The notes beneath the pieces are model-generated. The model was not told the DNA's origin, searched no databases, and saw only the letters and a list, made by a program, of their open reading frames with translations. Source: Chrysemys picta bellii (taxonomy: Eukaryota). From it: a DNA stretch of 64,000 nucleotides. A program made the position numbers and the translations under genes. The DNA is taken from NCBI RefSeq assembly GCF_011386835.1, contig NC_088798.1:104718001-104782000 (forward strand), given 5' to 3'. Positions 36,637 to 62,736 of this stretch are shown piece by piece; position 1 is the stretch's first letter; the number at the start of each line of letters is the position of its first letter.

Positions 36637-36859
36637 GGGAGGAAGTGAAGAACCCCCAGAAATCCATCCCAACAGGGATCGTCATCTCCCTCTTGGTCTG
36701 CTTCCTGGCATGCTCTGGGGTTTCAGCTGCCCTGACTCTCACGGTGCTGTACCACATCTTGGACCCCAGGAGCCCATGGCCAGTGGTGTTCGAATACATT
36801 GGGTGGAGCGTGGCCAAGAACGTTGTGGCTGTGGGGTCGCTGTGCGCCCTGACCACCAG
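36637..36859 (+). pseudogene. Orphan exon of a cationic amino-acid transporter (SLC7A1/2/3 family), probable unitary pseudogene remnant
   Basis: tttcccag|GGGAGGAAGTG...ACCACCAG|gtgaga, 223 nt, phase 1 to phase 2. Translates [74 protein letters not shown], about 51/73 identical to the recalled human SLC7A2 segment GEEVRNPQKAIP...GSLCALST with no indels. No other CAT exon was securely found. Confidence 0.85.
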
Positions 36860-37884
36860 GTGAGAAGGGGGCTGTGGGGAGGAGGGAGAAGCACATTGGG
36901 AAGAAGTTATTTTTGCTGAGTTTACCTCAGACTCCGTTCATGTTCCATAGGCCCAAACAAAGTTTCCTGAGCATCGATAAAGCCTTGGGTGAGCTTTAGT
37001 CCTTGTGAAAGTCAGAGATGGATAGAGCCATGCCTGCTTCCCCGCCCAGCCCCAACTCAGCTCAGCCAATGCACCCCCCCCGTCATGACCAGCAGCACCC
37101 CTGCTTTTCCAGTCCTGGGCCCCAGCAGAGCTCTGCCAACGCACCCCAATTGTGACCTCCTCCAACCCTATCTGAGCAAGGATCTGGAGTCAGGCCCATT
37201 CGTTTCACCAGATTACACGTAGGCCTGCTCCCTGGAGTGCAGGGGGGGCAAAAAACACAAGGGACAAATCTGTGGGGAAGCTGCATTTCTGGGCTGTCCT
37301 GGGCCCAGGCTCTGCCGCTGCTTCACACGCAGAGCTCCCATGAACATCAAGAGCAGGCTTTGGTGTGTGGGACGGCTACAGATCCAGCATGTGTGCCATT
37401 GTGCTAATAATGCAGGGACAAACCTTTGCCCTCGGGGGCAATGCTAGGCAGGGCTTACGATTCCAAGCGGGAGGAGACCTCCGGGTGCCATGTGGCCCTC
37501 GCTCCATCGTCCCACAGGGAATTAACCTGCAGCTCTCCAGCGAAGCTCAGAAACGGGGCTTCTCCAGCAAATATAGGTAAAAAGTCAACACTGAATATTT
37601 CCTCTGCCCACATGCAGCTCTAACCCTAACCCTAAATCTCCCCCGAACCATAGGGACACTCCACACCACATCCTGTCCCCCTTTAAGGCCCCGCAGCCCC
37701 CACGTCTAGTTAATATGTGCACCCATCTTCCAGGTTGCGGGGATGGCCTTCGTTCCACAAGTTTGCCCAGCATCCTGCAGAACTGTCCTATCATGGAGAG
37801 GCCACATGAGTCAGGGCTTAATTTGTAATGGCAAGAGAGGCCAGGGCTCAAGCAATTGTTTTACATTCATAACGGATACAGCAA

Positions 37885-59600: not shown

Positions 59601-62600
59601 GTCAGTCTCTGGGTCTCTGCCTGGTGGGCTTCCTTCAGCCTCTCCGTTTCCTCCTGATGTCCTTGTAGCAGCCTCCCAATCTCCCTCTTCTGCTCCTCCA
59701 GCAGCAGGGCCTTCGTCGTCTCCACATCCTCGTGCAAGGGAGCTGCGATGACTGCAAATTAAACAGAAATGGCTAGACCGTGGCTGGCTGGTTTTGCTGA
59801 CAGGATTCTGGGGCTGTTTTCTACTCGGTCACCAGTTCGAATCCAGACCTGGTCAAGCTCATTATCGCTTGGGGGCGGTTTGGTGGCCCGCATAAACTAT
59901 GATCTCAGTCTAGTTCCTATTGGACAATTACCCACACTACTCCTGGCACTAATTAGCACCAATGGGCATCGTGTTGGCGGTCTGCACAATGGGGAGAAGT
60001 ATCGAACAGAAACAGGCGACTCCCTTGGCCTCCCAGTCCTGGGACTGACCCTTCCAGCTCAGGGCTGAGGGGTGTGGCTAGCTATTTCTCCCTGTACCAC
60101 AAACATGTCTCATTTAGGTCTTTGTTTCCTGTCAATCGTTCCCAGTTTCTGTGAGTGCATTCATTGCTCAACGACTAGTTGGAGCGAATCATTTCCAGCC
60201 ACCAAGTGCCTTGCAAACAGTTGGCTACAGCTGACTGCTAGTCACAGTTTGTTGTGCGAGAGTGGTCACGTGGTACAGTGTCCAATTCCTGATTGGGTGA
60301 CTGAAGCTATTTAAATGGGACTTTAGCCAATGACAAATACTGCTGAATAACTCAGCTGGTAGAGAGCACTTATCTCTGAGCTTGTCTGTAGTTCTATGCC
60401 TGAGCCAGCCATTCACATAAGGGCTAGAGTGTGTCAACTCCAGACAGGGCAACAATACACATACCCGTAAGGCAGTGTTTCTCGAACTGGGGTCACCACT
60501 TGTTACGAAAAGCCCCTGGAGGGCTGGGCCGGTTGGTTTGCCTGCCCCGCCCGTGGCTCCCACTGGCCACGGTTCGCTACTGCAGGCCAATGGGGGCTGC
60601 TGGAAGCGGCGGCCAGTACGTCCCTCAGCCCACGCTGCTTCCAGCAGCTCCCACTGGCCTGGAGCAGCGAACCGCGGCCAGTGGGACCTGCGGACGGGGC
60701 AGGTAAACAAACCGGCCTGGGGCTTTCCCTACACAAGCGGCGACCCCAGTTTGAGAAACACTGCCATAAGGTAATTCCTCCTACTAGCATACAGACACCA
60801 TCCTCTCCAGCGAATATCCTCCTCACTACTGCACCGACTGCTTCCTTAGGGGCGGGATTGTTTGTCTGGTGGGACGTTTTGGCCAGCTAGTGCAGTGTTT
60901 GAGCGGGCCGTTTGTGGTGTTCGCCTGGTCATACATATTTCTAGACTTGAGTCATCGATTTCTCTGTCCATGAACAAACACTAAGGCAGCTTCCCAGCGT
61001 TCTACCTACCCACTTCCCTTGGGCAAGCAGCTTGGTTTTTTAACTTGCTTCCCTTAGGAATTCGTGACATTTTCAGACCTTGCTCAGATTTTCATGACCA
61101 GTGTTGTCACCCAGGCATTCGAGAGTGACTAATAAGATCAGTTCATGAACAGCCGCACGTGGAATTTGCTGTTCATCTTGGAAACTGTTTGTGAATCTCT
61201 GATTCTCATTCCTGGGCAGCACAGGGAAAACTTACACTGATGCCCTGCCAATACCGAGCCTGCTTCATCGGTAGAGGGGCTTCTGTGGTGGCAGCATGAC
61301 ATGGATGGAGTTTCAGCATAGATCCCCGGCTGGTGTAACTCAGCGTCCCTCCATTGAGTCATTGAAGATGGGCTAATTTATGCCAGATGAGGATACAGAT
61401 CTTTATTTCTAGCCTGGCTCTGCATTGTGCAGTTTGTCTCATACAAGTTGGCAATATTTCCACTAGAACAAGCATGCATTTCCAGGAATGCATGCCAAAT
61501 ACTCTGTCGATTTCTAAGGAACCATCTGTGATGAAGTGGGAATCTCCTGTAATATTTTATGATTCCCATGAGTGCCTCAGTTTCTCTTTCTACTTTGCAC
61601 TGCTCCCCAGGCGGGGCAGAGAAAGAGACACGGGCTGTTGTGTCAGGTATCTGTATGGGGTGAAATAAATGGGCCAGTCAAGTACTGGCTGAAACCGCCC
61701 CATATCAATGGAGGGTCCGCAAAGACAACGGAAGCCCCAAAGACTGAGCAACTGACATTTATCCGTGGGACTCTCCTGCAGGCGGAGCGTGTGAACTCAG
61801 CACGGGTCTGCAGGAGGTGGACAATGGACCAAAAGGTGTCAGGTGGGTGGGATAAGAGCTGGCTTTTGAAGGGTCTCAACAGCTCTCACCTGGGAGTGAC
61901 ACAGGGACATGGAGGACCAGAGCCAGGAAAGGACACTAGATGGAAGGCTGGTGTGGCCAGAAGAGATGGTGTTTTAACCTTTATTCCTCTATGCTAATCT
62001 CAGGCCTTCCCAGTGCTGCGTTCCATCTGCCTCTGTTCTGAAAAGGCTGCCTGGTGCCTGTGCCAATACTTGCCGAGGCGCACTGAGCCCTGAAGTGTGT
62101 CCAAGACTCTGACCGGCGATTTATCTCAGTGGGACGTGTGTCTCAGGAGTGCTGAAGCCCGGAGGCTCAGTTTTGGAGGCACCGAGGCTGCCTTAAGGAA
62201 GAGTGGGACCCCTTGAGGGTCTGCCACATAGAAGGGGATCCTCCAAATGGCTGTTTAAAACCTGGCGTGTAGCATCAATACTGTGGCTCTGTGACGCCAT
62301 CTCAGGTGGGACTAATGCCAAGACCCCCAGGGAAACTGGAGTGAGAGAATCCACTCTGATTTAACTTGAGTCAGTAAAGCCCTTTTACCCCAGTGATCCT
62401 CAGACACATCGCCTCCCCGTCCGGAGGAGCTTTCTGAGCAAACACAGATGAGATGGCCTTGGTATGGACCAGAATAGAAGACTCACTAATCACAGTGCCA
62501 CTTTGGCTGCATCAGAGCTCACAGTGCTGCCTGTCTTAGCAGGTACAGGTGCATCTGCGCATGGAACACATTGGCCCATCTGTTTGGACCCGGTCTTAGC

Positions 62601-62736
62601 TTAATGCTTTTAAAGGGGTAGGTGCACTGAAAAGCCATGTGAGGAAACAGATGTACACCTCACCATGATTCTCTGTCTTCACGGCCGTCAGCTCCTGGGA
62701 AGCCTGCCCCTTTGGCTGCCGAGCTCTTAGTCGTTT
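53527..62736 (-). CDS. CCDC69: Coiled-coil domain-containing protein 69 (exons 2-9; exon 1 outside window)
   Basis: Join (minus): 62664-62736, 59582-59751, 58438-58525, 56978-57051, 55662-55763, 54957-55076, 54384-54481, 53527-53695. This is 894 nt, open, GT-AG. It contains VEKERDLEL, MKRVEESILSRDYKKHIQ, DYGSPSHFWEQELESLHFVIEMKNERIH and EKEELLYRVL, and ends PLIAT*. CCDC69 is the known neighbour of ANXA6. Confidence 0.95.
53723..53788 (+). mobile_element. Very short CR1 3' tail
   Basis: 65/66 nt identical to the 3' end of the CR1 at 16584-16819. Confidence 0.9.
54384..54481 (-). CDS. CCDC69: CCDC69 exon 8
   Basis: 98 nt, MERNLLLEEKVKTLQQENEDLHVQTQNHLTMT. Confidence 0.94.
54957..55076 (-). 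CDS. CCDC69: CCDC69 exon 7
   Basis: 120 nt, DYGSPSHFWEQELESLHFVIEMKNERIHDLDKKLLNLETV. Confidence 0.95.
55662..55763 (-). CDS. CCDC69: CCDC69 exon 6
   Basis: 102 nt, ETIDRLNSQLKSFQEKMKRVEESILSRDYKKHIQ. Confidence 0.95.
56294..56660 (+). mobile_element. Old LTR-like fragment
   Basis: Starts TGTGATGGGG; purine-rich interior; a similar start occurs at about 51860. Ends not resolved. Confidence 0.35.
56978..57051 (-). CDS. CCDC69: CCDC69 exon 5
   Basis: 74 nt, EVQRAHDQEMLLLRESYQTAQSSLQ. Confidence 0.88.
57800..58247. mobile_element. hAT MITE
   Basis: TIR CAGGGCCGTCC...GGATGGCCCTG; TSD TCTCTTGG/TCTCTTGA. Confidence 0.87.
58438..58525 (-). CDS. CCDC69: CCDC69 exon 4
   Basis: 88 nt, VEKERDLELNKQLSKQFDTLNREHEENLR. 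Confidence 0.92.
59582..59751 (-). CDS. CCDC69: CCDC69 exon 3
   Basis: 170 nt, VIAAPLHEDVETTKALLLEEQKREIGRLLQGHQEETERLKEAHQAETQRLTQDVKIQ. Confidence 0.85.
59771..60072 (+). mobile_element. LF-SINE-like ancient tRNA-derived SINE
   Basis: B-box-like GTTCGAATCCAG, followed by TCTCAGTCTAGTTCCTATTGGACA and TGGCACTAATTAGCACC blocks matching the recalled LF-SINE consensus. Confidence 0.7.
60473..60763. mobile_element. hAT/Charlie-type MITE
   Basis: TIR CAGTGTTTCTCGAACTGGGGTC...GACCCCAGTTTGAGAAACACTG; TSD CCGTAAGG/CCATAAGG. Confidence 0.9.
62664..62736 (-). CDS. CCDC69: CCDC69 exon 2
   Basis: 73 nt, KRLRARQPKGQASQELTAVKTENH; phase 0 to 1, matching the next exon. Confidence 0.75.

Follow-up and report, generated by a model that had tools for sequence, protein, structure and literature searches.

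The interval between ANXA6 and CCDC69 in the turtle Chrysemys picta bellii very probably holds the second copy, here called clade B, of an ancient block of three genes whose sister copy is SLC7A2-PDGFRL-MTUS1, located in humans at 8p22. The stretch analysed, referred to as the window, comprises 64,000 nucleotides of contig NC_088798.1 (assembly GCF_011386835.1, positions 104,718,001 to 104,782,000 of the forward strand), contains no N bases and carries, in this order, ANXA6 (-), an exon of the cationic amino acid transporter (CAT) family (+), a PDGFRL-like gene (+) and CCDC69 (-). An earlier note made from the letters of this DNA had described a CAT-family exon, a complete PDGFRL-like gene and a convergent CCDC69, and all three were found where it had placed them. 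Its central proposal, that they form an old paralogous counterpart of the SLC7A2-PDGFRL-MTUS1 block, is largely borne out by two PDGFRL clades of apparently pre-gnathostome age and by the same gene order at both loci. In what follows, the genes of the human-type locus are denoted A and those of the window-type locus B.

PDGFRL sequences fall into two groups. A search with exon 4 of the window gene among 50% representatives returned two tiers of matches, at 63-89% and about 42-53% identity, with the human-type cluster in the lower one, and searches with human PDGFRL and with a clade B protein of lungfish yielded two large sets. Members of both sets bear the same NCBI name, platelet-derived growth factor receptor-like protein, and clade B is annotated in scores of species, so that the copy which the earlier note called hidden in fact stands in public annotation under the name of clade A. 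In a 65-row tree, clade A (human type) and clade B (window type) were split at 100 by the Shimodaira-Hasegawa-like approximate likelihood ratio test (SH-aLRT), and the window protein was sister to that of Mauremys among the turtles within clade B, hence separate from the canonical orthologue clade and not nested in it. Rooting on the immunoglobulin (Ig) regions of VEGFR-type kinases recovered the family (support 100/99), clade A (84/83) and clade B (89/87), and the order of cartilaginous fishes, ray-finned fishes, and lobe-fins with tetrapods is repeated in both clades. On these trees, the A/B split would predate the gnathostome radiation. In amphioxus, the protein search gave a VEGFR-like kinase match only, and no PDGFRL orthologue was examined there.

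Both genes coexist in many lineages. Scored by same species or same genus, they occur together in 12 taxa (clade B and clade A proteins, respectively): Pelodiscus (P0101, P0261), Pelusios (P0164, P0262), Varanus (P0130, P0265), Rhinatrema (P0110, P0260), Ambystoma (P0114, P0279), Erpetoichthys (P0139, P0322), Apteryx (P0212, P0291), Sarcophilus (P0154, P0254), Rhynchocyon (P0175, P0230), Loxodonta (P0015, P0256), Megalops (P0140, P0328) and Anguilla (P0192, P0331). Clade B also includes sharks, gar, lungfish and frogs and, among mammals, echidna, platypus, opossum, Tasmanian devil, bilby, sengi, elephant, many bats and cats. The earlier belief that mammals lack the second gene does not hold in general: monotremes, marsupials, Afrotheria, bats and felids carry clade B, which in opossum stands beside CCDC69. 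No primate or rodent was found among the 120 best clade B matches, while many were present among the clade A matches; this pattern fits, without proving, a loss in those two orders. Human and mouse yielded clade A only in the searches made, and to our knowledge humans have no PDGFRL-B. Among the teleost matches listed, clade A was confined to Elopomorpha (tarpon, eel); for cyprinids, characins, catfishes and percomorphs, clade B alone was represented. Judged by these matches, human PDGFRL and the common fish "pdgfrl" are probably not orthologues.

The same arrangement of neighbours is seen at the two loci. When genes were looked up in 10-kb flanks around PDGFRL, the complete triplet was found on the B side in gar (AA_permease gene of 617 amino acids (aa) (+), PDGFRL-B (+), MTUS1_CCDC69 gene of 314 aa (-)), anole (transporter of 614 aa (+), PDGFRL-B (+), CCDC69 of 286 aa (-)) and gharial (CAT-B gene of 613 aa (+), PDGFRL-B (+), CCDC69 of 306 aa (-)). 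The transporter (630 aa, +) precedes PDGFRL-B (+) in Megalops cyprinoides, and PDGFRL-B (+) is followed by a CCDC69-type gene (-) in Mauremys, Emydura, opossum and white shark. On the A side, the corresponding triplet is present in Megalops atlanticus (transporter of 669 aa (+), PDGFRL-A (+), MTUS gene of 769 aa (-)) and in prairie chicken, a grouse (transporter of 655 aa (+), PDGFRL-A (+), MTUS1 of 1309 aa (-)), while Pelodiscus has PDGFRL-A (+) beside MTUS1 of 1329 aa (-). The last of these loci confirms that turtles possess a separate PDGFRL-MTUS1 locus, as had been anticipated, and that the window does not carry their only PDGFRL. Three families, namely CAT (+), PDGFRL (+) and MTUS/CCDC69 (-), thus show identical order and orientation at the A and B loci.

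The window copy of PDGFRL-B is intact, constrained and expressed, in agreement with the earlier claim that a second PDGFRL has been retained. Its six coding exons (39172-44773, +) all have GT/AG borders, contain zero internal stops and encode 402 aa with 95% identity to the annotated Mauremys reevesii protein P0099 (91-98% by exon in tblastn). Exon 1 (39172..39226) holds the start codon and the signal peptide and is joined to the next exon by an RNA joint (39225/40595). Exon 2 (40596..40941; 94% to P0099, RNA joints at both ends) encodes a Lys/Pro-rich linker and the beginning of Ig domain 1, and exon 3 (42071..42222; 98%) is also bounded by RNA joints. Exon 4 (42436..42729; 97%) carries a VEGFR-1-like Ig domain (Pfam PF21339, 2.8e-16), exon 5 (43488..43627), whose acceptor was set by P0099, has Pfam Ig matches, and exon 6 (44552..44773; 91%) supplies an I-set Ig domain by Pfam and the stop codon, all on the forward strand. 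Upstream, a conserved non-coding stretch (38769..39093, +) that aligns with gharial at 71% over 336 nt is the likely promoter and 5' untranslated region. Against Mauremys, the proportions of synonymous (pS) and nonsynonymous (pN) differences are 0.117 and 0.023, giving a pN/pS of 0.19, and the gene is under purifying selection. Transcription is documented by a 1389-nt RNA contig of run X17 that starts at 39131 in exon 1 and splices exons 1-2-3-4 at the predicted borders with 0 mismatches. This is the sole spliced contig; runs X15, X16 and X21 behave like low-coverage genomic DNA, with contigs that cross introns, and are uninformative on expression. Within intron 2, the segments 41550-41750 and 41950-42150 reach contig depths in the thousands in all four runs, a sign of high-copy interspersed repeats.

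The protein has one hydrophobic stretch only, the N-terminal signal peptide, and no transmembrane segment. The basic linker that follows contains 19 Lys plus Arg and 13 Pro in 77 residues and leads to three Ig domains with cysteine pairs 112/159, 212/262 and 309/372, typed by Pfam as VEGFR-1-like and I-set; the orthologues match PF22854, PF21339 and PF07679. From these features, PDGFRL-B is read as a secreted receptor-like protein without kinase domain and with Ig domains of the ligand-binding type of VEGFR and PDGFR. It would be soluble and bind a ligand outside the cell in the manner of a receptor. The human 8p22-type PDGFRL (PRLTS), representative of clade A, shares the signal peptide, the PF22854, PF21339 and I-set domains and the lack of transmembrane and kinase regions, and likewise has six coding exons, a CAT transporter upstream and a convergent MTUS-family gene downstream. 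In contrast, PDGFRL-B is only 44-46% identical to clade A (45-46% for the window protein against turtle PDGFRL-A proteins), constitutes a clade of its own that extends from sharks to mammals, exceeds the clade A protein by about 25 aa, has a Lys/Pro-rich linker, and has CCDC69 as neighbour instead of MTUS1.

The upstream neighbour of PDGFRL-B, the transporter CAT-B, is a complete gene of 613-630 aa in gar, tarpon, anole and gharial and has decayed in turtles only. The earlier idea of a decaying CAT gene applies to turtles, where a neutral single exon is left, and fails elsewhere. Like CAT-B, SLC7A2 (CAT-2) is an AA_permease transporter of the CAT1-3 type with the same position relative to PDGFRL; the two differ in length (655-669 aa for SLC7A2 vs 613-630 aa for CAT-B), and CAT-B groups separately from tarpon and bird SLC7A2. 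In the CAT tree, the tarpon and bird SLC7A2 sequences come together (94/94), apart from CAT-B, and the gar and tarpon CAT-B sequences are joined at 99/98; therefore, the separation of SLC7A2 and CAT-B would predate that of the ray-finned and lobe-finned lineages. These comparisons support the CAT gene next to PDGFRL-B as an old paralogue of SLC7A2. CAT-B was compared by eye with human SLC7A1, human SLC7A3 and one SLC7A2 from the supplement of one study (PMC7584565): ALVDMM, YLMVQL and SF(M)V are common to CAT-B and SLC7A2, and DLVDLM, YLMMQ and FKV take their place in SLC7A1 and SLC7A3. This motif sharing makes CAT-B a likely sister to SLC7A2 and its identity with SLC7A3 improbable. When the first coding exon of gar CAT-B served as query, 893 matches came back, nearly all of them unnamed short fragments and insufficient to place CAT-B; the few that had a name were labelled "cationic amino acid transporter 2(-like)". 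The tarpon SLC7A2 locus (L007, 1383-1496 and 1930-2073) contains both mutually exclusive exons, of the YAMAEDG and FAMARDG types. The CAT-B loci that span the alternative exon (gar, Megalops cyprinoides and gharial; L002, L008 and L010) have one copy, FAMARDG, which is CAT-2A-like, and published work ties the Arg of this exon type to the low-affinity state (PMC7584565).

In the window, CAT-B persists as a pseudogene remnant, a relic exon at 36631..36861 (+) that matches Pfam AA_permease (1.6e-6) and CAT1 in the PDB (1.7e-23). Its frame stays open over 77 codons between a clean AG acceptor and a GT donor. With 1 of about 11 CAT exons detectable, the coding capacity for the full 14-helix AA_permease plus AA_permease_C protein is lacking; neither tblastx with the gar, anole and gharial CAT-B genes nor sensitive blastn found any CAT exon other than the relic between 17 and 40.6 kb. 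The relic shares KSIP, YHLLDP and LTTR with gharial CAT-B, as well as its position and strand, which identifies it as the orthologue of the CAT-B gene that precedes PDGFRL-B elsewhere. When the window is aligned with gharial, an element at 33.4-33.6 kb and the promoter region of PDGFRL-B (38.8-39.1 kb) are picked up too, which puts the relic in its expected place within a shortened interval. Its protein is 76% identical to the orthologous exon of gharial and 73% to that of gar, compared with 84% between gharial and gar, suggesting that the exon has changed faster in the turtle lineage. Relative to Mauremys, pN/pS is 0.73 and the DNA identity of 93.8% compares with 88-93% for the flanking blocks. 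Seven replacements are common to the two turtles, five are found only in the window and three only in Mauremys, several of them at otherwise invariant CAT positions. A 0.7-kb segment with the relic (window 36513-37203 vs Mauremys reevesii L001 7482-8170) is inverted relative to PDGFRL-B between the two species, the flanks being collinear, and in the pleurodire Emydura a 4.6-kb stretch that would include the relic is replaced by about 1 kb without any match. No spliced RNA contig covers the relic in the four runs, X17 being the only spliced one. The sequence comparison marks the relic as a neutrally drifting remnant and not as a member gene of the CAT transporters. CAT-B disappeared, in one loss or two, once turtles had parted from archosaurs. 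A GC-rich minisatellite with units of 14-27 bp (35975-36430) lies immediately 5' of the relic exon and a 31-bp x 15 tandem array (37885-38352) between the relic and the PDGFRL-B promoter; both occupy room that CAT-B exons take in gharial.

The third member of the block, CCDC69, is convergent with and downstream of PDGFRL-B, ANXA6 being on the other side of the block. Seven coding exons were detected by tblastx to neighbour genes over 53560..59725 (-), at 53560-53697 (the 3'-most), 54383-54490, 54951-55076, 55659-55763, 56972-57064, about 58430-58537 and about 59570-59725. Their counterparts are the genes 3' of PDGFRL-B in Mauremys, gharial, anole and gar, which carry the Pfam domains MTUS1_CCDC69_CC1/CC2; identity is 73-83% with gharial and anole and 47-69% with gar. 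For the last three exons, one-to-one alignments with MTUS1 were also obtained, at 41-51% for tarpon, bird and Pelodiscus. No Pfam family match was obtained on the short exon pieces themselves, and an "MGC" start of exon 1 was looked for near 62.6-62.8 kb, close to the end coordinate of the earlier note, and not found. Published work counts CCDC69 as a paralogue of MTUS1 and MTUS2, nearest to the MTUS1 isoforms (PMC11621681). Within the CCDC69/MTUS1/MTUS2 family, the window gene is orthologous to the MTUS1_CCDC69_CC1/CC2 genes (about 290-315 aa) that lie beside PDGFRL-B in other species, and it is an ordinary CCDC69 with nothing unusual about it.

Collectively, these data would be accounted for if the A and B blocks separated before the jawed-vertebrate radiation, most likely in the vertebrate whole-genome duplications, and if differential gene loss among lineages followed the duplication of the block. 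Turtles keep PDGFRL-B as a working gene and have also retained CCDC69, CAT-B having been destroyed, with one exon surviving in the window species and in Mauremys and drifting neutrally. A much younger origin, namely a recent duplication or translocation of SLC7A2-PDGFRL-MTUS1 confined to reptiles, could draw on the single NCBI name of both clades and on the identical order and orientation at the two loci, and is nevertheless exceedingly improbable given the 45-46% identity of the window protein to turtle PDGFRL-A, the presence of clade B in sharks, gar, lungfish, frogs and mammals, the separate turtle PDGFRL-A beside MTUS1 and the B triplet found in gar. The tree and the distribution of clades A and B refute such a duplication, and the translocation of a sole PDGFRL is rejected on account of the turtle PDGFRL-A that exists separately beside MTUS1. 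At a smaller scale, the lone CAT exon might still function, as part of an unannotated transcript or as an alternative 5' end of PDGFRL-B, as its open frame of 77 codons, its intact AG/GT borders and about 20 nt of upstream intron conserved with gharial could suggest. Set against this are the pN/pS of 0.73, a DNA identity to Mauremys of 93.8% compared with 88-93% in the flanks, the replacements at invariant CAT positions, the inversion in Mauremys, where no gene is called at that place, the absence from Emydura, and the spliced PDGFRL-B contig, which begins at 39131 with no joint to the relic. A function of the exon is accordingly very unlikely and was rejected on the neutral pN/pS, the inversion, the loss in Emydura and the missing RNA joint.

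A stronger competitor of the whole-genome origin is an equally old segmental duplication of three neighbours, which we regard as unlikely on balance. The comparison covered three gene families, and the lamprey sequence does not date the split; the data gathered here do not separate the two mechanisms. This last point weighs against the proposed history, as do several others. Lampetra planeri P0063, 656 aa long and named PDGFRL, has 34% identity over 329 aa to the window protein and forms a long branch outside gnathostome A and B, unplaced relative to either, which leaves the timing with respect to the cyclostome split undated, and the cartilaginous-fish member of clade A is a single long-branch whale shark sequence (Rhincodon P0020). 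The CAT tree comprises 269 aligned columns and 7 rows, and in it the relic, contributing 75 residues, joins the sauropsid CAT-B sequences with weak support (70/88). The comparison with SLC7A1 and SLC7A3 was made by eye on few motifs of the supplement sequences (PMC7584565). Finally, the block is not intact everywhere: in Xenopus laevis, the locus is rearranged and PDGFRL-B (+) has PIG-H (-) at its 3' side where CCDC69 is expected. A W-specific ccdc69 copy has been reported in this species (PMC10578606); therefore, CCDC69 would have moved or been duplicated in that frog.

On the other side, the human map argues for whole-genome duplication over segmental duplication. SLC7A2-PDGFRL-MTUS1 is located at 8p22, MTUS2-SLC7A1 at 13q12 and SLC7A3 at Xq13, so that MTUS2-SLC7A1 and SLC7A3 contribute to the three- to four-fold pattern left by two rounds of whole-genome duplication (2R), and the 13q12 and Xq13 genes lie near ParaHox and class III receptor tyrosine kinase paralogues. 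On human map positions only, the block may be assigned to the ParaHox-linked 4/5/13/X paralogon. The closeness of CCDC69 to MTUS1 and of CAT-B to SLC7A2 fits the topology ((8p22, 5q33), (13q12, Xq13)) for several families. Because CCDC69 is nearest to MTUS1 and the motifs of CAT-B are those of SLC7A2, the three families fit a pair of sister blocks, one of the 8p22 type and one of the ANXA6-CCDC69 type. A more specific proposal, that CAT-B, PDGFRL-B and CCDC69 are the missing fourth 2R copy and complete the set of 8p22, 5q33-type, 13q12 and Xq13 blocks, we consider only somewhat more probable than its negation.

The remainder of the window adds flanking context. The 5' part of ANXA6 occupies positions 1..~17500 (-), where open reading frames (ORFs) of the exons have annexin VI as best PDB matches (residues 379-413 at 4.9e-28 and residues 180-212 at 4.8e-16). 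Its introns contain a 43-bp x 22 tandem array (4328-5393), a 42-bp x 5 array (8285-8493) and a (GT)40 microsatellite (11000-11079), and ORFs at 13554-14200 (-), also in an ANXA6 intron, resemble a reverse transcriptase fragment of a CR1-type long interspersed nuclear element.

Seen as a whole, the two blocks are a probable ohnologue pair with lineage-specific loss, which is a well-known kind of arrangement and no new kind of system, and they offer a compact three-gene case of reciprocal loss after ancient duplication with a datable pseudogene remnant. Searching the literature for a second PDGFRL, or for a fourth transporter of the CAT1-3 type, turned up no relevant paper, and PDGFRL-B and CAT-B, already predicted in public annotation, are apparently undescribed in papers. 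Two ancient genes are both called PDGFRL, and functional results on "pdgfrl" may not transfer between species, as many reptiles and amphibians, some birds and some mammals carry both genes and most teleosts appear to have clade B only. CAT-B is also relevant to the set of arginine and lysine carriers that animals other than mammals possess. If the block is indeed the fourth 2R copy, CAT-B would be an undescribed, functional fourth y+-type transporter in fishes, lizards and crocodilians, provided with only the low-affinity-type exon, and most teleost "pdgfrl" genes, probably that of zebrafish too, would belong to clade B and not be orthologues of human PDGFRL, a hidden paralogy that would affect model-organism work on "pdgfrl".

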